Assembly (NCBI GenBank): GCA_001643675.2
Contig: LSRY02000041.1
Span: 248,001-312,000 of the forward strand
Direction of reading: 5' to 3'
Length of the DNA: 64,000 nucleotides
Source of the DNA: Monocercomonoides exilis PA203
Taxonomy: Eukaryota; Protista; Preaxostyla
This document shows positions 25,239-58,273 of this stretch, piece by piece (within the stretch, counting starts at the first letter, position 1; every line of letters begins with the position of its first letter). The notes beneath the pieces are model-generated. The model was not told where the DNA came from and did no database searches. It was given only the letters and a program-made list of their open reading frames with translations. The position numbers were made by a program, and so were the translations under genes.

Positions 25239-25412
25239 GAAAAACTGAAATAATAATTTATGGTTAAAAATTTTCTAAAAAAAACTTATTAAATAATCAA
25301 ATTATTAACATTTTTTTTATAAAAATAAACTTAGAAACAAATCGTTTTAAAAACTCAAAAATCAAGAATCAAATGTGTTTCTTTCCATTTTTCATCAAAA
25401 ATCATACAAATA

Positions 25413-26421
25413 GGGTCAACTTTTTAATGGGACTTTTTTCTTTATTGGCACTTTTTTTGTTTTTGCATGCCAATCATTCAAAAAAGCTTGATGAACCACA
25501 ACACTCGGATGAGTGTGTTTATAAAACAAATACATTAAATTACCGGTTTTTTTTTAAATATTGTTTAATTTTCGTAGAGATATAGCAATTTTTTATTTAT
25601 TTTGAAGTGACTTTTTTCAGCCGAAGAAGCATTCCACAAAATTTTGAAATCCATTTTTAAAAACAACTAGCATTATCCTTTTTATATTCAAAATCTTAAG
25701 TTTAACAATTTGTTTTTTCTTCATTTTTTCACATTTCAATTTTTTATCAACATGAGAATACAAATTTGAAAATTTCTTTGTTATTAAAATGAAGTGTAAA
25801 AAATAAAAATATAATATGAAAAATACACACTCTTATGAAGAAGTGTGAAAAAGGTTGAACATTAATATTTTCTATTTGCTTCAAACAGGTGAATGGTCAC
25901 AACATTGAATGATCTGAGATCAAACTTATTCAATTTTGATGTGTTTGAGACAAACGGAAAATGTTAATGTTCAACCTTTTTCACACTTCTTCATAAGAGT
26001 GTGTATTTTTCATATTATATTTTTATTTTTAACACTTCATTTTAATAACAAAGAAATTTTTGAAATTGTGTTCGCATGTTGATTAAAAAAAATGAAATGC
26101 GAAAAAATCAAAAGAAAAAAAACAAGTTGTTCAACTTAAGATTTTGAATATAAAAAGGAAAATGCCAGTAGTTTAAAAAATGGATTTCTTATTTTTGTGA
26201 AATGCTTCTTCGGCTGGAAAAAGTCACTTCAAAATAAATAAAAAATTGCTATATCTCTACGAAAATTAAACAATATTTAAAAAAAAACCGGTAATTTAAT
26301 GTATTTGTTTTATAAACACACTCATCCGAGTGTTGTGGTTCATCAAGCTTTTTTGAATGATTGGCATGCAAAAACAAAAAAAGTGCCAATAAAGAAAAAA
26401 GTCCCATTAAAAAGTTGACCC
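25413..26421. mobile_element. ~1-kb fold-back palindromic element A
   Basis: Starts GGGTCAACTTTTTAATGGGAC and ends GTCCCATTAAAAAGTTGACCC. Inverted arms of ~480 bp flank a ~50-bp spacer (~25890-25940). TA on both sides. Confidence 0.9.
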
Positions 26422-26480
26422 TAATAACTATTTCATCAACAAATCTCTCGTTTTAAGAAAGACTTTCATATGTTTCATTT

Positions 26481-26556
26481 CTTTTTTCATTCATTATAGC
26501 TTGTGAATAAATTTCTTCTTTTTTTCATTCATTATAGCTTGTGAATAAATTTCTTT
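26481..26556. repeat. 38-bp tandem duplication
   Basis: TTTTTCATTCATTATAGCTTGTGAATAAATTTC occurs twice with period 38. Confidence 0.85.
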
Positions 26557-26968
26557 TTTTTTTCACTGTCTGAAGAATTTTTGAATTAAATAAATCCAAA
26601 TTTAGGTGATGAAAAAGAATAAAAAACCGGATACTACAATGAACAAACATGTGAAAGTGGTTTCTTTAAAAACATTCATTAAGAACCATGAAAACATTCA
26701 TCAAACGATATTATTGTGTTATACATATGAAATAATACTGGTGTGCTGCATTTCTGTTTTCAGACACGCACACCTCGCACACCACTTTGCATTTGAAGGC
26801 ACGCCATTCTGCTAAAGCATCTGGATTTTGAAAATATTCCTTTCTGATGTTCATGAAGCTGCAAACTGAAAAGCATGAGAATAATTTATTTAAGTTGGAG
26901 ATTTCGAAAAAGGCTCTTGCAATATTTTTCTTTTGCATTCCTTCTCTCTGTTTCACCACATCCAAATA

Positions 26969-27985
26969 GAATCAACTATTTAATGGGACTTTTTCATTAA
27001 CTGGCACATTTTTTGTTTTTGCTTTCCAATTGCTGAAAAGCGCTGATTGGCTTTCAGTGCTTCAAAAAACCTTTTTTACAAGTTTTACACAATTTATTTA
27101 CAATTTATTTTTTAATTTTTGCTTATTACATTGAGAAAGCAGCACTGAGCAACGTCCAAGAAGGCATGATGGGATATGCATCCATTAAAATTTTAATAAT
27201 TTTTATATTTATATTTATTTTATTTATTTATTTATTTTATTTTATTTTTCACAAACACTTTTTTCTTGTTTTTATGCAAGAACAAAACTGATTATTTCTT
27301 TGCAAATCTGATGAAATGACAAAAATAAAAATTTGATATGAAAAGTGAATACTGTGATAATGAAGTGTTGAAAATTTTTGAATTGATTTTTTATATAAGC
27401 CTTGAACAGTTAAATAAAATTAAACGAAAATGAACTTAGATCGCATTTTTTATATTTTGAAGTGTTCTTGACAAATAGGAAAATCAATTCAAAAATTTTC
27501 AACACTTCATTATCACAGTATTCACTTTTCATATCAAATTTTTATTTTTGTCATTTCATCAGATTTGCAAAGAAATAATCAGTTTTGTTCTTGCATGTTG
27601 TTAAAAAAATGTGTGAAAAAACAAGAAAAAAGTGTTTGTGAAAAATAAAATAAAATAAATAAATAAATAAAATAAATATAAATATAAAAATTATTATTAA
27701 AAAAGAATTTTAAAATAGATAGATGATAGTTCATGCTATCCAAAACATGTACCCAATTTCTTGGACGTTGCCTAGTTGGCTGGTAAAAGTCCTTTCAAAT
27801 TTAACAAAAAAAATTTCTCAATGTGTAATAAGCAAAAATTAAAAAATAAATTGTAAATAAATTGTGTAAAACTTGTAAAAAAGGTTTTTTGAAGCACTGA
27901 AAGCCAATCAGCGCTTTTCAGCAATTGGAAAGCAAAAACAAAAAATGTGCCAGTTAATGAAAAAGTCCCATTAAATAGTTGATTC
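26969..27985. mobile_element. ~1-kb fold-back palindromic element B (relative of A)
   Basis: Starts GAATCAACTATTTAATGGGAC and ends GTCCCATTAAATAGTTGATTC. TA on both sides. Long inverted arms with a spacer at ~27395-27478. Termini and inner arms resemble element A. Confidence 0.9.
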
Positions 27986-29014
27986 TAAGTATCATTGGAC
28001 AAACACAATAATCTATTTTTTGAAGGAAAAGTTGTTCTACAACATAAGGGCATCCAATATTTTTTAGACTTCCATCTTTTTCTGTTTCTGTCACTCTGAC
28101 TTTCATAATATTTACGATGATGATTTTCGACTCCATCTCAAGTCAACATAACACTTACAACTTTTTTTTTTAATTGACATCACTCAAGTTATTCAAGACT
28201 TTTTTTCAAATTGGATTGGATTCATTTCACAAATCTCAATTGTTCCATCTTCATAACCTTTATTATCTTTTGTTTCCTCTTCTTCTTCACCTTCTTATTC
28301 TTCTTTGCCTTCTCTGCATTCTCTGCTTTCTCTGCCTTCTCTGGCTTCTTCTTTCACTACTTCTTTTTCTTCTTCACTGTTTCATCTTCATGTTTTTTAA
28401 TTAAAATGCAGTAAGACAGGTTTACTCCGAGATAATGAGCATTATTTTAATGTATGGGTGGTTTGAGTGAAAACTTCTCTCTCCCAAAATGACGCGGAAA
28501 ATAGGGCGAGTTAAAAAAAAAAGTATTACATTAAAAATTGTTTAATAAAATAATACATTGTCCGCTTCACTTCAACGCTGACTTCGCCTTTTGCCTTGGT
28601 CACGAAGACCAGAGGTCAGGGGAAATTGCACTTCGGAGCTTTCTCCTGCAGTCAGTGCAAAGATCCGGTGAGGCGAGTGTTATAAAAACGGAGCAGAAAG
28701 AAAAACCACTCTCGCTTCCGCGAGGCTTGGAAAAGAAAACTGCTTGTGCAGTGCTCTGCCTCCCGCTCTTTTGCTGATCTAGCAGAGCAAATCCACTCAC
28801 CACATGCTGTGTGGGCTAATCTGACACTTTTATTTGCACTTTCTCTTCATTCCATGTTTCTTAATCCGTGTTATCTGTGTAACCTTGTGACTTTGGGCGG
28901 TTTGTTCTCCTTTCTTCCCCTGAATCTCTCGCACCTTCTTTTCCTCGTCATATTCCTACCAATATGTTTCTTTCTTTCGCACCCAGCTGCTTTGAGTCTC
29001 TCCATCTACATTCG

Positions 29015-35209: not shown

Positions 35210-38200
35210 TCATCTCTCACTGAACAAGCTCCCACCCCAACTCCCACTTCCATTCACATCTTTTAATTCGTTTGTGTCTTCCTCAACATCCACAGCATCT
35301 GACACAGTCATAATCACGGCTCCTGCTGGAAAACGCTGAATGAACTCTCGCTTCAGTCCAATCAAAGAAGGTCGTTGTTCTGGAACTGCTGAAACACACT
35401 GGTCAATCAGCGTGCTCATTATTCCATTGTTGGCTTCATTCTTCGACCTTTCTCCATTTACAATCTTCTGCCCTGCCACCTCTGCTTCAAACTCTCCAAA
35501 TGGGATCTGAAGGGTCAGACACTCCCACAGCATCATCCCGATCGAAAACACAACCGACTCCTTTGTTGCCCCCATCTTCTTGTTCATCTGCAGCTCTGGT
35601 GCCTTCCACCTCAGGCACTCCTTTCTGAAGTCATCCTCATCCTCTTCGAATGCTGATGAGGGAAGGGAGTCATCGTCATCATCATCACCATTATCACTGG
35701 CAGATGTCACAACTGTTGATGATGAGATGGAAGACGAGTCTGAATCATTATCTGACAACAAGTCCGAATGCATCACAATACAGATCACCATGTGCTCAGA
35801 GAATAGGACAATGTGTGGACTGAGATTGGCAAGTGACTGAAGAGGATTTTCCATTTCGTCAAAGGAGTGGAGGGCGAGATTAGCCACCCAAAACAGGATT
35901 TGTGCAGCTGTTTGCTCTCTTTCCTTCAATGTGCCAATCGCCATCTCTTTTGTCTTATTCCTTCCATGCAACAACATGAACAGCGAATCCCTCAGATCCA
36001 CAATCAGCTTCTCATGAGGAGACGAACAGGCCATGGCATCCACCAGATTCGACATTGATGAGGTGGTTGGGCACAGATCCTCTCCTCGAACAAATGTCGT
36101 ATCTGTATCTGAAGTATCTGTGGATGAAATGGATGGTGATGGTGTTCTTTTCCTTGCCTCTTCTTCAATCTTCTCCAACATCCATTGAGGGATCTTGTCT
36201 GAATCTCTCCCAAGGATGTATTCTGTTGAGCCGCTCTCAGATAATAAATGCTCCGATGACTCTGAATGTTCCATATTCGTATCATACACCCTCTTCTTTG
36301 CATTCTCTTCATTCTTCCTTTCTGCCTCCCTTTCTGCTCTCTTCCATTGAGCCTCAGGCGACATCTCCATCGTCACCATCTCAAATGCCTTCGGATCTTT
36401 TCTAATGTTGTCATTCACAATCTCTCTCAAATCCTTCGCTTCATTCTTTGCCTTTCTCCATCTGACTGCAAGAATAACAGAAACAATCAGAACAATCAAA
36501 AGAATAACTGCCATAATAACAATTATCAACAACCAGTAAGATTTCCCTTCTTTTCCTCCTTCAACAATCCTTTCATCTCCTTTGACCTTTGATTCTGTTT
36601 TGTTCTTCAGAATCTGTGGGTTTGTTGCAGCCAATTGTTTTCCAAACAATATCATCACTGATACCTCTGTTTCATCTGAAGCCAATGATATATTTTCTGA
36701 TGGGATTATTCCAATCACCTCTGTTTCTGAAACAAAGCTTTCTTCCTCAAAGTGATATGTTTCAGCCAATTCCACATCTCCTGTTTTGTAAACAAGTCTG
36801 AATGACAAGTCACATGGAACAAAAAGAGATCCATTGAATTTGATATAAATGTTGCTTCCATTTTCAATGAGAGAAGCATCTTCCAGTTTGGGAATGAAAA
36901 AAGGAGATGATCTTTCTCCTGCTATCCCTCTCAAATCACATCCACCATTCAGAATCCAAAGAGAAGAGTTATCTTTCAATCCATCCCCTCCCTTCAAACT
37001 CAAAATGGTCAGCGAAGCAGAATCTGAACAAATGATGTTTCTTCGAAGAGAGGGATATTTTTCAATGAATGGATTGTTGTTTGCAAACATTCCCATCTCA
37101 ATAACTGTTTTTCCTCCTCTTATCGAAATTCCTCCCTTTGACGAATCCTCAATCTTAATTTCTTTTGCGTGAAGATTGGAATTTTTCACATGGACAAGCG
37201 ATCCATTCCATTCACATATTTCTTTAAAACCATTATTTCTTTCTCTTTCCCTTTCATTCGCAATGGCTCCTGTTAATCGACATAAATCCATTGATACGTC
37301 AGTCATGTTGTCAAGTCCCATGATGCTTTCTTTATCAGAGCGAGAAACGCAATTTGAACACAAGCAATTGGAAATAACTGTATGAGCGGATGATGAAGAA
37401 GCAGAGAAAACAGTAGCCCCTTCTGAATTCCTTGAACAGTTGTTGAATGATGAATCAATAAGAGTGATTGTTCCTGAAGTTTTTTCGTTCATTGAAAAGA
37501 CACAACCTTCAGACAACTTGACCCCATTAGCATCAATTCCATTCAGCACAACACTTCCACATTTTCCAATCTCAAATATATCTGTTGTTGATTCGATTTG
37601 TTCCAGTTTCACATTTGCAAAATTAATCTCCTCTCCATTCAGCAAAAATGAAGGCTTTTTGAATGAAATGAACGATACTGAGCAGTTATCAACACGAAGA
37701 ATTCCATTTTCGATGTTCATCAACGTTGAATTGAGGACAACGGATTCAATGTCTGATTCCAAAATCGAAGAAAAGTCAACAGATGAAAGAGAAAGTTGTC
37801 CATTTGTTTCATGAATAATTGAATTGCTTAAATATGAAAACGATTGATCAAAGTTGAATTTCACACTCTCAATCCGAACTTTCTCTGAGGTTGTGATCAG
37901 ATTTCCCTCTATACCAGCAATTGTTGAGGTCAAAAATACCAAAGCAGCTGAGGGAGATTGAAGTGAGCGGATGGTCACATCCTGAGCATCACATTCCCCA
38001 ACAACATCTGTTTGACCCAATATTAACAGCTGTGAGTATAGAGATGGAATAATGTGTTGAACTCCAGCATTCAGCGAATCACAAGGCATACTGAACTCTC
38101 CACATTGCTTGCTGTCTTCGTGATTGTCTGCAACTGATGACACAAATATCGTCTCGCTCCGGTATTTCATAACCCTCAGAAGATCTTCTTCCTCCACAAA

Positions 38201-41200
38201 CGAATCTGTTGTGCAGCCCCACATCGCCAGCTCTTTTACAAATGGCGCTCTGAAATCCAAAAGGAATTGCTCATCAGCAATTTGTGTTTCGATTGAGTGG
38301 CATCGAACATACACATCTCTCCCTCTGAATGCAGAGTTATCTCTGAATGTGATATTCGACAGAATAAAATTCAATGGCTGCTCAGCTGCTGAGGTGCATT
38401 CCAGAAACAGCCACCCACCTCTTCCTGTGGTTGAACAGAAGCACTCTGAAATTGTGCAAAATGAGCAGTTAAAGCTTCCTTCCTCATTCAAAACATAAAA
38501 CATCCCTCCTCCCTTTCCACACCTCGTTCCACCGCATTTCTTCATCGTTGTGTTTCGAATCACCATTTTCAATGGCTCATCATCATTATCATTTCGGATG
38601 ATCTGAATATCGTCAGTTGTGTTCTGGGTGATTTCTTCGAATATACTCCACCCAATAACAATATCTTGTTCTATTTCGTTTTTTTTTCTTCTTGAACTCT
38701 TTTCTATGCTCAATCCGCTTGCCCCGTCCAGCTCAATATTTTTCATCGTCAAATTTTTAACATTCAGAATAGTTGTTGACTGCACAGAAATAACATCCTT
38801 TGAAAAGCAAAGTGATTGTATTGAAACAAATTCCAACAGAATCGTGCCTCCATCTGCTTTGAGCAGCCCAAAGTTCATCATTTCTTCTTCTCTGTTTTCT
38901 TCCATTTTTGTGAAAGAGCAGTCTTTCAGCGTCAACAGTCCTTCGCTTGATCCAACATGCATCAAAACATTCACTCCACTTGCAAATGAAGATGGAATCA
39001 CAAACTTCATCAGCTCGAAATTTGTAATGCCCTGAATCTTCATTGCTGCTCCTTCTGCTCCTTCAAGCGATGAGACACATTCCAAAGAGCACATTTTTTC
39101 ATCATCCGATTTTACTGAAATTCCACTCACATCAACACATTTTTTAAGAAGTCCTTTTCCAATGATGTTAATATTTCTTTTATTTCCTTCAGACAATCGA
39201 TCCAATGAATAATCAATTGACAGACAAGGATAATCTGAGAATCCACAGGCACCCATATCTCTTCCTTCACTTCCAACAAATATCTTTGATCCTGTCGTGA
39301 GCCAGAAATAGACCAGTGGAATGGCATTCGTTGTGTCACTTCCGTCAAAGCCCCTCATAGAATCCAAAGAAAAATTGGACAGATGCCCAGTCACAAATGG
39401 AAGAGAGGCATTTGTGATGCTCTTCGTCAAGTTGGATGATTCAACAAACAGGTCATTTCCACATTTTGCAACATTTGGCTTGTCTGAACCAAAAACAGGG
39501 GATGATATCACAAATGAAGAAAAGCCATCAATCAGCTTCAGTGCCATCCCTCCCCCAAACCCAATCTTTCGTTCTTCTGCTGGTGCAGTGCATCCTGTGA
39601 ATGTGCATGAAATAATATTCATTTGAATGCTCCCTTTCAACTGAGCATCAATGGCCCCTCCTCTGCTTTCATCAGCAAGCACAGAACATCCATCAAAAAC
39701 ACATTCTTCAATATTTATTTCTGTGTTCGTGTTTTCATCATGGTTGTTGTCAATGCTCACACAGCCTCCGCTTCCAGCTGCTCTTTCGATTTTTGTGAAA
39801 TTGCTGTTCGTCATGTTCAACCAGGGAGTGTTCATCAACTCACTATTTATTTCACTTCCAGACAAAGAGATCAATGGATTTCCGCTCAAAGTGATTGAGG
39901 AAGCTGAGAAGGAATCAACTGACAAGGTGCCAGACTCAATAGATAAGAATAGAAATGCCATTTCTGATGATGGATTTTGAAGAGAAAGTGAACAATGAGA
40001 TAATATCAGTGATGATAATGAGGACGAAATAAAAGTGGAATGTGATGAGAGAGAAGAAGAAAGAGAGAAGATGAGTTTTGATAATTCTGTTTCAACATTT
40101 GTGGTCAGCATCGCAGCATCAGATTCAATTTCAATATCGGAGACTATCCAGCCACTTTGATCATCTTTTCCTCTGATTTCATGCTTCTGATCAGCAAAGG
40201 CCAATTCATCGCTCATCAAAATCTTTCCATTCACAATAACTTTCTTTTCTTCTGTTTGCCTTGTGAGAGAGTGCTTTATCGTCAAACAAGGGAATTGGAG
40301 GATTCCACAATTAGAATGATCGGATGCATCTGTGCCACTTACATGAATTTCTTCTGGTGTGGGAAGGAGATAAATGCACAGAGGGATAGCCAAAGTTGTG
40401 TTTCCATTGTCATATCCTCGAACTTTGTCAAATAAATCCAAAGAGGCTTCTACGCATGTGATTTTTTGTGATTCAACAATTTCTTCCAGATTGGGTGAAA
40501 TGACAAAAATATCATTCCCCCACTTGGCTGTGTTTATTCCGAATGAAGAAGATATCAAGATATTGGAACTTTCAGTCGATAATCGAAGAAGAATTCCTCC
40601 TCCAAGACCATTGGACGTTGAGCAAAAGCATCCATCAAAAGATCCGCCTTTCACTTTCACTTCGTTTTCATTCCCAACACATAGCATCATCGATCCTCCA
40701 TTTTCTGAATTTGTGCTTCCACATCCTTCAAAGGTGCAAGAATTCAGATCAATGTTTGTCTTGTCATTGGAAAATGACATCACAGATGCTCCGCTCGTTG
40801 TTCTCTCAATTCCATCAAAGGCACACTCAGAAAGTGCCAATGAAATGTCATTTGTCGAAGAAAGCGAAAACAACGAGGTTGTTGAGATTGTCTTTGCCCA
40901 GTTCACATGTTTCACTTGGAACATTCCGTTCTGAACGTTTATCAGCTCTGTGAAAAATGCTGTTACTGACGTTTGCGCACTTCCTGTTGATATGTTCAAT
41001 CTGCTAATATGCATCTCTCCTGTTCCAGTAATCTCAAATAGCCTTGACTCTCGATTATTTTCAAATGCACGGTCACACACAAGAACAAAGTCTCTGGCAG
41101 TCAATGTGCCTGTGGAGACTGAAAAAAGAGACAAACCAGATGCTTCAAATTCTATTTGAACCGTTGAGCTCAAATCGCTTTGGCCATATATTGTGTAAGA

Positions 41201-42962
41201 ATTGGTGTTGCAGTCCACACTTTTTGTCTCTGAAATCGAACCTGTGAGTATTGCAATATCAGTTACTAATTCTGGAATCAGCTGAGTGAGGCAGCGGCTG
41301 ATGGTGCAGCAAGGATAGCTTTCATCCAGTCCACACACATATGTATCAATGGCATTGGGTTCTGTTTGTACTGATGAGACAAATCTGATTTTTCCAAAAT
41401 CATTTCGAAGCCATTCACTTTTGTCAATGATGGGAATGTAATTTGTGACAACCCTGTTTTCTGTTTGTCTGGTAGTAAAGCAGGTGGAATCAATATTGTT
41501 TGTAATTGAATCTTGAAGCAAAACATCATGACCATATTTATCGCCTGTGTTATTGTGGAAAAAGCAGAAAAAAAGCAATGTTCCATTATTGTCACAATTT
41601 ACAAATAATGCCATTGCACCTCCTGCAAGCTTTGAATTGCAATTGCAAAATAGGCAGTTTGATATTACTGCTTGATCTGTGCAATTCCAATGCAAAATTG
41701 CGCCTCCGTCACCATTATCAGAACTATTACATCTACAGTTATCAAAATTGGAATTTATGATACATTCTTTCTGTTTTTCTGTTTTCGTTTGACGGAGTTC
41801 AATTGCTCCTCCATCATTGCCCGAAGAGCAATTTTGAAAGGAGCAATCTTCAACCATTAACTGAACGTATATGCTCTCCGCTGTAATTCCTCCACCACCA
41901 TAATCTGATCTTGAAGCACATGTACATTGGACGAATGTTGTATGTTGAACAAGGCATTCGGCAATATTCAAAGCATATATTCCTCCGCCTCTTGTTGAAG
42001 AAGCGTTGCATCTCACGAAAGTAGAATTTTCAATTGTCAAAATTGCATCAGCATTATCGTGCACATAAAGTGCGCCTCCTTGTGGTGCTGTACAATCAGT
42101 CCATTCACACAATGAAAAGGATTGGTTATCTGTCAAATTCATTTGCCCTTTTTTCTCAAGTGCATTCATTTCTCTTTTCCCGAAATTTATTGTTGTGTTT
42201 TTGCAGACAAATTTCTCTGAAGAAAGCGATCCACTTGAGATCCCTCCTTCAAAGGCATTCACGCACGAATAAATAAGGCAGTTATCCATTGAATTTCGAA
42301 AACATGAATGTTCCACTATATAATCACCATTTGAGGTATATTTCATTGACATGTTTCTGAAGTCGCAGTTTGAAATCTCTTCACTTTTGCTCTTTCCACA
42401 CAATAGGAAATAATCTGAAGCTGAAACAGCCAGATCTGCAACGATAGAATTTCTCAAAATGGCAGAATTTGAATCATCAGATGAAAAAGCAAGACTGGAA
42501 GGGTTCATATTCTTTTTGGGGATCAAACTCAGATTCACCACGCAGATTGACCCACTTTGCAAATGAAAAGGAGATCCCGATTTTTGGTGGGAAATGCATA
42601 AATCCAGCATCACACTAGATTCATCTGCTATTAGAATCAAAGGTGAAGAAGAATGTTCAAGAGCCACATTTTTCAGTCCTACTGTAGAATTGTAGAATTC
42701 AAAAAATGTATTTTTCACTGTAGATATTCCTAACTGCAATGTTTTCTCTCCTGAAAATGAACTCTGCTGGAACAAATAATCATTATCGACTTTTGATTGA
42801 AATTGTGCATCATTTGAGTTTCCTTCACCAAAATAAACACAATTCATGAAAAACACAAAAATCCAAAAGAATACCTTTGTTTACCAATGTGGCTGTTCCA
42901 GAGATATCTTGTGCTTCAAATGCCTTTCCAAGAATCAAACATGCCAAAATGCACAAATGCAT
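35210..42962 (-). CDS. Very large single-pass receptor-like protein with C-terminal kinase-like (pseudokinase) domain
   Basis: 2548-aa ORF. Probable upstream signal-peptide exon MHLCILACLILGKAFEAQ (ATG 42962) spliced via a ~52-nt intron. Extracellular GGA/GGG beta-helix-like and CGxxxxPCxSI repeats. TM YWLLIIVIMAVILLIVLIVSVILAV. C-lobe motifs RWKAPE, VFSIGMMLWECLTLQIPF and C...PEQRPS. Confidence 0.9.
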
Positions 42963-47387: not shown

Positions 47388-49790
47388 TGTTAAATTCTTT
47401 GAAAAAACAACATTTTCATCAACAATATACCATTATAAATTTATTTTAGAAGTCTTAGTGGAAAGCTGTAACCCACACTCAAGTGCAACTACAAGTGAAA
47501 AAGATCAAGAAAAGAAAAAAAAAGATGAAGATTTGTGAACGAGAAGAAAGAAATAGAGAAGAAAATGAAGATCAAAGAAAAATTGAAAATGAAGTCCATG
47601 ATCACGAAACCATAGACTACTCATCTTCATGGCATCTTCCCTTTCAATGGAAATCTGCATGTCTTCATAGAGTTTCATCACCATCTAACTTTCCAATCAC
47701 ATTTTGCTCATCTCAATCTTCTTCAACACAACCTTCTTTGACTCAATTGTCTCATCTTCACAATTGCATTCAAAATCAGTATCTTCATCAATACCCTCGC
47801 TTCTGTATTCTCTGCCTCAACCTAACTTGTATTTTCCTTCAATTCTCACTCTTCCTTCATCTTTATGCACATTTCCTCCTCAAAATTGCAACTTACAATC
47901 ATCTTTGAATTTCACAGCTTCTTCTGGTTCAATTTCCACTCAAAGCAAAACTTCTTCATCTTAAAATTAAAAAACATCTATTTGAAAAAAGAAATCAGAA
48001 AGAAGCAAATTATTTTGCCAGTTTTGAATCGCAGATATAGATTAAAAGAGAGTTTCATTATAATGTTTTATTCTTTTTATTTTTGTTACTATTATTTCCA
48101 AGTTGTTCGTTATATGTTGTTTGTTTTGCACATCACTTACAAATAAAACAAAAGCTGTTGCTAAAATTCTTTAAACATTCTTTTTTTAATTATCTTTATA
48201 TTTTGTGTGATTGAGATGAAAAACTTCTCTTATTAACAAAACTTTGACAATATAAAAAGGATTTTTTAAATTATGTTATAAATAAGACAAAAAAAAAGTT
48301 ATTTGGTGAAATTTGATATGAGAGGAAAATAAAAAATGAAAAACAGATAAGATTCATGTTAATAAAACATTTTAATATTCCATCCTCACCTTGCTTTTGA
48401 ACAATTTAAAAAAGTTTCAAGAATCGAATCAAACAAACATAAACAATAAAAAACTTAAAAAAAACATTTTAATACTGAACAAACAGACCTTCTATTACAT
48501 TTTTTTTATAGTTTTGTTTTGTTTGTAATCATTAATTCTTCAATTAAAAAAATAGCGATCACAAAAGCTTTGATCATAAAAATGCATTTAACAGCAGAAA
48601 AATAAAGTGTATTTCAAAAAATATTGAGTCATTCGCGAAAAGAAAAAAACATTCACATAAGAATAAACAATTCGCAAAAGAAAAACATATTCGAGTATAG
48701 GTCTATTTTTATGAATTATTATTCTAATTTTTTCCCATCGATGGAAGTTTTCAAAAATTTTCAAACTTAAGATTTCAACGTTTTCAGTGAAACGATTATT
48801 TCTCAATTTAAACTTGTTATAAAACATTAATTTTGCACATTGATGATTTCTGAATTTATTATGTGTCAAAATTTATTTGAAAAGTTCATTTTGTTTAATT
48901 TTCAAATAATATGAAAATTTCATGTTTCGATCAAATTTCTGTTCACGCTCACAAACAATCACCGTCATGAAAATAAAATCTTGACATTGCTATTATTGCA
49001 ATTTTTTGTAAAGTTTCGTTTGAAGGAACAGAAATAAGATCGAAATATGAAATTTTTTATATATATGAAAATTAAACAAAAGGAACTTTTCTAAAAAAAA
49101 TTTAGACATATAATAAAATTTTAAGAACATAAATTTTTAAATGAAATAATATGATTTCTAAAATAATCTCCCATATCCAAAAGAATTACAATAACTGACA
49201 GAATTCTTGCATTTATGAAAAAATCAATTATTTGTTCCTAACTATTGCCGCTATCTAATTATTAAAAATTTGAAATTCTTTTGCTAAATTAAATATAGAA
49301 ATATTGAAAAGTCGAGAAAAATATTCCAAAGAACTGTGTAGAACAAAATTCACAAAGCAAATAATTTCGTCCAAAATGTTCATTTTCACAATTTATTTTG
49401 TAATGCAAATGAAAAATTTATATCCTTTCATATTTTTAATTCAAATGTTTTATTATAAAAAACTGTTTGTATTTTTGAGAAATAAATCTAATTGTAAAAT
49501 AGTCGAACACAAATAAAAAATAATTAAAAATCAAGACAAAAATTAGTTTGTAAAAAAGGAAAACAATTCGCATTTCCAAACTCAATGCAGAAACAAAGTT
49601 ATAAAAAAAATTATTAGATGGAAAAACTAACACAAACAATAAAAATCCAACATTTTATCAGATATTAATTAACAATAATTTGTGATAGCACAAACAACAG
49701 AACAACATAATCAAATACACAAAAGTCACTCGAAATCTTTAAACAAAAATTGATTGTAACAAAACAAAAACGCACTACTCATTTCCTTTC

Positions 49791-53454: not shown

Positions 53455-53721
53455 ATAAATAATAATTGGGTGATTCTTTTTGAAAAGTCACATATGTTTA
53501 ATTTTCTGATACTTCAAAAATTTTATATTTTGATAAATATTTTGTTAACAAATAACAAACTTATATTTTAATGGAATTTATTTCTTAATAATGCTATTTA
53601 ACACATTCATGAGAAGATTTGTGCGTGGAAACAGAAATTTGAGCAAAATAAGAAATATTTGATTTATTTGAAAATTAAACATATGTGACTTTTCAAAAAG
53701 AATTACCCAATTATTATTTAT
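53455..53721. mobile_element. 267-bp MITE-like element with 52-bp inverted repeats
   Basis: 53455-53506 and 53670-53721 are reverse complements at 51/52. Non-coding AT-rich interior. Confidence 0.75.
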
Positions 53722-57283: not shown

Positions 57284-58273
57284 GGGTTACACTTTTACTC
57301 TGACCTATATTTTAACCCCCACCCTTTTTTTTGTGGAGCTGGCTACGGCTTGATGCAAGCTTGTAGCCAACAAAAAATAACTAGAAATGTTTATTTTAAT
57401 ATATTTTGCTTATACAGAAAAAATTTTTTAATGAAAATTATTTAACTTTGAGATCTCGGTATTTTTAAAATTTATTTTTTGATCATAAAATTGATGGTCT
57501 TTCCATGAATATAACATTCTGGAAGTTTTAAGCTACACTGTCATTACACATCTTATCCTTTTTATTGTTTTTATAACTTTTCACATTTCACAAGTTTCTT
57601 TTTCACTCGTTTTCTCATTTCATCCACTTTTCGAAAAAATGAAAATTTTTAAAGAATGATGAATTTTTGTAAAAATTTATAAGATTATCCTAAATTTATG
57701 TTAGAATGTTAATTATGTTGATATTCAAAAAAGTTTTACAAAATTTATTTTAAATAGAAAAATGAAAAACATCATTTTCGGTAGTTTTGATTTTTCCAAC
57801 CAGTAACATCTTTTCATCAAAAATTTATTTGAATATCAACATAATTAACATTCTAACATAAATTTAGGATAATCTTATAAATTTTTACAAAAATTCATCA
57901 TTCTGTAAAAATTTTCATTTTTTCGAAAAGTGGATGAAATGAGAAAACGAGTGAAAAAGAAACTTGTGAAATGTGAAAAGTTATAAAAACAATAAAAAGG
58001 ATAAGATGTGTAATGACAGTGTAGCTTAAAACTTCCAGAATGTTATATTCATGGAAAGACCATCAATTTTATGATCAAAAAATAAATTTTAAAAATACCG
58101 AGATCTCAAAGTTAAATAATTTTCATTAAAAAATTTTTTCTGTATAAGCAAAATATATTAAAATAAACATTTCTAGTTATTTTTTGTTGGCTACAAGCTT
58201 GCATCAAGCCGTAGCCAGCTCCACAAAAAAAAGGGTGGGGGTTAAAATATAGGTCAGAGTAAAAGTGTAACCC
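57284..58273. mobile_element. ~1-kb fold-back palindromic element C
   Basis: Starts GGGTTACACTTTTACTCTGACC and ends GGTCAGAGTAAAAGTGTAACCC. Near-identical inverted arms of ~450 bp with a spacer at ~57740-57820. Flanks TA/TG. Confidence 0.9.

Follow-up and report, generated by a model that had tools for sequence, protein, structure and literature searches.

Two non-coding fold-back elements, A (25413-26421) and B (26969-27985), lie 547 bp apart in a 64,000-nt stretch of the Monocercomonoides exilis PA203 genome (contig LSRY02000041.1, positions 248,001 to 312,000), hereafter the window, in which the positions of A, B and the other features are given. A and B are members of two related TA-targeting fold-back families. 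Comparison of many copies strongly supports the conclusion that an active process, which acts across the families, keeps both arms of a copy matched. We consider it probable that A and B are TA-inserting, non-autonomous fold-back transposons and that their arms are homogenised in place by intramolecular gene conversion.

Structure and families of the fold-back elements

A reading of this DNA from the sequence alone (the sequence-only reading) had described two palindromes of about 1010 bp, some 550 bp apart, with a short spacer at the centre of each. This agrees with the measured structures. A is 1009 bp and B is 1017 bp long. The arm blocks of A are 252 nt (98% identity) and 148 nt (92% identity) in length and enclose a 54-nt unpaired loop (25888-25941), and those of B are 164, 80 and 117 nt, all at 100%, around an 89-nt loop (27391-27479); both loops were placed by the arm search and the fold. 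Each element folds as a single strand into one long hairpin, with energies of -467 kcal/mol for A and -431 kcal/mol for B. Arms of about 470 nt with loops of 54-89 nt give both elements the structure of foldback transposons. B also has an asymmetric block, 27131-27193 in the left arm opposite 27697-27823 in the right. The right block is about 90% like family C, a related family described below, and the left one aligns only with many gaps. This fits a left-arm patch that may be a deletion-riddled version of a family-C-like right arm which escaped overwriting. Neither element has an open reading frame (ORF) of more than 84 amino acids (aa), and an Rfam search with A and B gave no match. Tandem Repeats Finder (TRF) found no tandem sub-repeats in the arms, apart from a two-unit 18-nt repeat and, in B, a short AT-rich microsatellite.

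The terminus GGGTCAAC/GAATCAAC...TTTAATGGGAC is common to A and B and occurs four times in the window against none expected. TA is present at both ends of A (25411-25412 and 26422-26423) and of B (26967-26968 and 27986-27987), as flank comparison shows, so that the shared TA-flanked terminus first seen in the letters is borne out. The terminal 59 nt (approximately 60) of A and B are 86% identical and the interior is approximately 71% identical. The conserved terminus of families A, B and C is found in A at 25413-25472 on the plus strand and is mirrored at 26362-26421. Each end carries two 18-nt sub-terminal direct repeats, which in A span 25423-25457 (TRF) and which we take as putative transposase-binding sites.

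The genome searched was the Oxford Nanopore Technologies (ONT) assembly of M. exilis PA203, which has 82,301,135 bases in 101 contigs. When a 25-nt terminus was counted with up to three mismatches allowed, 263 occurrences were found, against 0 for the reversed terminus used as a control, and the total number of elements may be roughly 130. The relatives of A (family A) number at least 19 near-full-length copies, which are 86-93% identical and spread over many contigs. Family C consists of at least 14 copies of approximately 1005 bp that are approximately 98% alike. B has no close relative: over its whole length the best match reaches 72% identity, and in blocks only B is 82-88% identical to family C. 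Of 33 copies examined, 29 have TA at each end, without a longer direct repeat outside it, and the target context around TA is A/T-rich and roughly symmetric. The elements are non-coding and bounded by terminal inverted repeats (TIR) like MITEs (miniature inverted-repeat transposable elements), but at approximately 1.0 kb and with some 130 elements they are larger and rarer than is typical of MITEs, which mostly stay below approximately 800 bp and reach high copy numbers.

The multi-copy families and the short reading frames support the earlier proposal of a non-coding fold-back family. A and B had also been regarded as diverged copies of one family. Their divergence is real (77% identity at aligned positions, 62% with gaps counted), but the single family had to be rejected, with A in a family of at least 19 relatives and B a singleton related to family C. 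Because A and B belong to different families, the contrast between them is not a valid yardstick for the matching of arms, as which it had been used.

Arms are matched within copies and diverged between copies

We therefore made the comparison of arm against arm and copy against copy within families, for 18 family-A and 14 family-C copies. In every copy the left arm was aligned to the reverse-complemented right arm over stem columns 1-440, with the loop left out, and only substitutions were scored because homopolymer lengths in ONT sequence are unreliable. Arm identity in family A was 99.36% within a copy and 91.7% between copies, and in family C it was 99.82% and 97.7%, respectively. Eleven of the 18 family-A copies have no mismatch across a stem of approximately 425 nt, and within family A the nearest other copy is 90.7-97.3% identical. 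A is the worst-matched member of family A, with 22 stem mismatches.

The private substitutions of individual copies are the most direct evidence. In family A, 113 were mirrored in both arms and 15 were present in one arm only, and in family C the numbers were 43 and 7. Both families together thus have 156 mirrored and 22 one-arm private substitutions. Mirrored private substitutions were found in 18/18 copies of family A and 13/14 of family C (31/32 altogether). Since each mutation arises in one arm, mirrored private changes require copying from arm to arm. The 36 arms of family A, placed in a maximum-likelihood tree, gave the same picture. The two arms of a copy were sisters in 17 of 18 copies, being either identical or joined with 95-100% support, and copy-specific branches of 0.01-0.066 changes per site arose from a star-like backbone. 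The longer variants L035, L037, L039, L040 and L041 have perfect arms over 461-780 nt. The lineage of B is approximately 28% diverged from its nearest relative, and the arms of B are perfect over 361 nt.

An insertion has been mirrored as well. A nested TIR element of approximately 256 bp is present at mirrored sites in both arms of L039 and of L040. The two insertions within a host are identical, at 256/256 and 255/255 positions in L039 and L040, whereas they are 78% identical between hosts, and the two hosts have unrelated flanks. The earlier suggestion that something keeps the arms matched therefore holds, on the mirrored private substitutions, the sister arms and the mirrored nested insertion. 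A retains an empty site of the nested element, ATAT at 25580-25583 (mirrored at 26251-26254), where high-scoring segment pairs 1-171 and 168-842 overlap by 4 nt. This overlap suggests a target duplication of either 4 bp (ATAT) or 2 bp (TA).

The nested element belongs to a hairpin mini-element of approximately 240-256 bp with termini GGGTGATTATT/GGGTAATTATT. Copies are located at 53468-53709 and 48870-49102 of the window, L041:1032-1272 and L039:1087-1342. The mini-element is also present in one arm only of L042, and in L041 it takes the place of the centre. We considered whether the nested element was homogenised later than the rest of the arm, and dropped this idea as the arms of L039 and L040 are perfect right up to the loop. 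A segmental-duplication clock from L039, L040, L042 and L043 was unusable, as the flanks are unrelated and there is no fixed-locus comparison.

Sites and limits of arm copying

Mismatches between arms are concentrated at the edge of the element. The terminal nucleotides 1-3 had 8 mismatches in 99 positions, compared with 60 among the 13,668 interior positions (Fisher p = 2.8e-8), and in the longer variants mismatches are likewise concentrated at positions 1-13. Such an excess is expected where conversion requires flanking homology on either side. At the termini, the mismatch rate is approximately 11% in family A and 5% in family C, the same order as the divergence between copies. This fits the idea that the terminal bases record the true age of a copy.

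Copying has also spread outside the element. Three of 33 copies (L004, L005 and L032) are mirror-symmetric past TA, into unique flanking DNA. L005 has 23 bp of symmetric flank and L032 approximately 100 bp, and in L004 both sides are symmetric over at least 1,500 bp, with 99.8% identity. A palindrome at least 4 kb long has the family-A copy L004 (G000:C25:1692606-1696613) at its exact centre.

Sequence has been taken from other copies too. In A the 22 mismatches are confined to arm positions 205-386 (182 nt), and the outer 204 nt have none. The inner right arm of A is identical at 185/185 positions to the right arm of L014 on contig C66, whereas A and L014 are approximately 89% identical overall, and in the tree the right arm of A clusters with L014 with support of 96/98. 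The 22 mismatches of A are thus explained by an L014-like foreign tract in its right arm, which covers at least 26017-26250 and probably crosses the loop from approximately 25812. L018 bears an L009-like tract at 99.3% identity. The foreign tracts from L014 and L009 are approximately 0.25-0.45 kb long and have the form of discrete conversion tracts.

The edge effect, the flank symmetry, the foreign tracts and the lack of siblings in family A, where the best pair is 97.3% identical though most copies have perfect arms, indicate that copying most likely takes place at the resident locus and not in a transposition intermediate. Symmetrisation at each transposition is the main alternative. A single-strand or hairpin intermediate, or gap repair that switches template to the nascent arm, could make the arms equal, and each copy would then be a cut-and-paste lineage of its own. 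This would account for private substitutions and the nested element being mirrored, and as most termini are intact, most copies could still move. We regard it as unlikely. Without non-homologous end joining (NHEJ), the gaps left by excision should be refilled from the sister chromatid, so near-identical siblings would be expected, and family A has none. Edge mismatches, flank palindromes and foreign tracts in resident elements are not predicted by symmetrisation during transposition, and the copies L017, L014 and L040 have damaged ends and still have perfect stems. Of the two mechanisms named in the sequence-only reading, gene conversion, in place, is thus favoured, and replication through a hairpin intermediate fits less well with the edge mismatches, the flank symmetry and the foreign tracts.

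Proposed mechanism

Given the anatomy, TA flanks, families, concerted arms, foreign tracts and flank palindromes described above, we infer that break repair drives the gene conversion and that it is linked to the missing end joining of this organism. An element would insert at TA, as in Tc1/mariner/pogo-type elements. Breaks in or near the element would then be repaired by homologous recombination, and the usual template would be the partner arm in cis, a few hundred bases away. Another copy may occasionally serve as the template and leave a foreign tract, as in the right arm of A. Copying may sometimes overrun the end of the element, and the flanking DNA would then become part of a larger palindrome. 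According to the published gene inventory of M. exilis, NHEJ is missing, whereas the organism has both homologous recombination and mismatch repair (PMC6759080). The absence of NHEJ would bias repair toward such homologous templates. A domain search of the genome detected Mre11; the same search for Sae2/CtIP was blank, which is uninformative.

When the two tract-bearing copies are left out, family A has 13 mismatches in approximately 6,800 stem positions, and its copy-specific branches are approximately 0.04. Roughly, each site has been overwritten some tens of times per 4% of copy divergence, and the copying outpaces point mutation approximately 20-40-fold. As a tentative extension, which we hold to be possible rather than probable, every fold-back transposon might be a self-templating repair unit whose overruns seed gene-bearing giant palindromes. 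If this is true, healing of arm from arm keeps non-autonomous elements intact far beyond the age of their sequence, and fold-back transposons are nucleation sites of a genome-wide, palindrome-based gene duplication.

Several points weigh against in-place conversion of TA-inserting transposons. The separated arms of L047, which are 5 kb apart, differ at 5/323 positions and are less well matched. In contrast, L035 has perfect arms on either side of a 3.1-kb spacer, and there is no clear dependence on spacing. The signatures of copying in place are indirect and come from the genome of one strain, and the perfect arms and the giant palindrome at L004 are drawn from one published assembly, made with ONT reads and Pilon. 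The genome has more than 100 DDE_3 loci and more than 700 candidate DDE_1 loci, none of which lies inside an element bounded by the A, B or C termini, and no autonomous element was found. TA as the target duplication is the parsimonious view and is not proven, because TA is itself palindromic. The only empty site seen is the ATAT of the nested element in A, and none was seen for families A, B and C.

Other explanations of the matched arms

A simpler explanation would be that there is no homogenisation, that the copies are young insertions from palindromic masters, and that A and B differ as separate families. A and B are truly in different families, and family C is young, with 97.7% identity between copies. 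The 156 mirrored against 22 one-arm private substitutions, in 31/32 copies, contradict this explanation. It would also need 18 master lineages for family A, each with one perfect-armed copy, and B has 361 nt of perfect arms with a nearest relative at only 72%. We consider young insertion very improbable.

Nor do we give much credit to an artefact of assembly or polishing. The assembly was made from ONT reads with Canu and was corrected with Nanopolish and by Pilon in ten rounds (PMC8767320), so fold-back chimeras of ONT reads, or equalisation of the arms by Pilon, have to be considered. At more than 100 loci the flanks are unrelated, TA is duplicated and the sequence is specific to the copy, and arm differences survive in A, L018 and L006. 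Chimeric reads would not give 1-kb palindromes that end at transposon termini. An artefact is therefore highly unlikely as the source of the matched arms.

Selection for a hairpin in RNA or DNA, with the pairing kept up by compensatory mutations, as in a hairpin-RNA gene, would suit the perfect stem of approximately 470 bp into which every copy folds and the four Argonaute (Piwi-domain) loci of the genome, but it has hardly any probability, since compensation takes a second independent mutation at each site, which is implausible for 156 events with almost no intermediates, a 256-bp insertion and the copying of flanks are beyond it, and the Rfam search had no match. If transcribed, the elements would give dsRNA hairpins of some 450 bp, as the sequence-only reading suggested, and the genome does have Argonaute genes.

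Candidate partners and other features of the window

L035:1114-5831 (G000:C23:118114-122829) is a 4.7-kb element with related termini and perfect inverted repeats of 782 nt. Its 3.1-kb cargo carries a run of minus-strand ORFs, in which no Pfam domain was found. L036 has no coding capacity. An intact 325-aa ORF for a Tc1/mariner-type transposase (HTH_Tnp_Tc3_2 + DDE_3) is located at L034:2985-3962 on the minus strand, approximately 480 bp from a perfect-armed family-C copy, and relatives of it with 343-aa frames are found at at least three other loci. L047 (G000:C25:1814200-1822400) is a rearranged family-A copy, in which 5 kb separate the right outer arm and the remainder. The intervening 5-kb DNA contains an IQCH-like ATP-grasp ORF. 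Dating of L047 by this interruption was abandoned, as gene-bearing DNA with neither long terminal repeats nor TIRs provides no clock.

A third palindrome of approximately 990 bp is located in the window at 57284-58273, with termini GGGTTACAC...GTGTAACCC and with TA on its left and TG on its right. It has no BLAST similarity to A, B or C. The spacer between A and B includes a tandem duplication with a 38-bp unit at 26482-26565 (2.2 copies, 97%). The minus strand at 35210-42856 carries an uninterrupted ORF of 2,548 aa with a C-terminal protein-kinase domain, which is probably a member of a large tyrosine-kinase-like family. According to the assembly paper, this family overlaps the unclassified repeats (PMC8767320).

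Comparison with known systems

Palindromic, TA-targeting, non-autonomous transposons are known from Caenorhabditis elegans (Tc6/Tc7-type) and as 'PAL' elements in Repbase. A and B are similar to these in being TA-flanked and non-coding, with a near-total inverted repeat and a short loop, in forming dispersed families, and in their presumed mobilisation in trans. Unlike them, they live in an oxymonad host, have arms of approximately 470 bp of complex sequence, and have no sequence relation to them; arm homogenisation has here been traced in one copy after another. FB and Galileo of Drosophila have longer target duplications. The elements of M. exilis share with FB and Galileo very long inverted arms that dominate the element and an association with rearrangement, whereas the arms of FB and Galileo are internally repetitive, and those of A and B lack tandem sub-repeats and go with a TA duplication (PMC3573991, PMC4079207). 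The Galileo paper does not discuss arm homogenisation.

The literature searched contained no paper showing arm-to-arm homogenisation over the dispersed copies of a fold-back transposon family. Arm-to-arm gene conversion has a further parallel in the palindromes of human sex chromosomes. Inverted repeats of Caenorhabditis also resemble the elements described here, as their structure is kept better than their sequence, their arms are more than 99% identical around a spacer, and their upkeep is attributed to active recombination (PMC1803023). Unlike the present elements, the Caenorhabditis and sex-chromosome cases are single, large, often gene-bearing and compared between species, whereas here dozens of 1-kb copies are compared in one genome. 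Fold-back repair of breaks at inverted repeats is similar in the mirror copying near a break, and it would explain the flanks of L004, L032 and L005 (PMC6103520, PMC7999016, PMC10164571). That repair was induced in yeast and in tumours, whereas the palindromes of M. exilis are natural, fixed and transposon-centred, with an inferred mechanism.

The assembly paper reported that 35% of the M. exilis genome consists of unclassified repeats, with no mention of MITEs or palindromes (PMC8767320), and families A, B and C belong to that fraction. Arm identity is unfit for dating such elements. The dispersed copies provide dozens of natural replicates of one small palindrome, in which the overwriting of inverted arms only 1 kb apart outpaces their mutation many times over, and in which the copying has edges, can use other copies and can spread to the flanks. 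They give a quantitative handle on the maintenance and birth of palindromes in a eukaryote whose end joining is reported to be missing. Compared with known systems, the TA-targeting, non-autonomous fold-back transposon is a known kind; the families are new, and the arm copying in them is a well-replicated form of a phenomenon already known.

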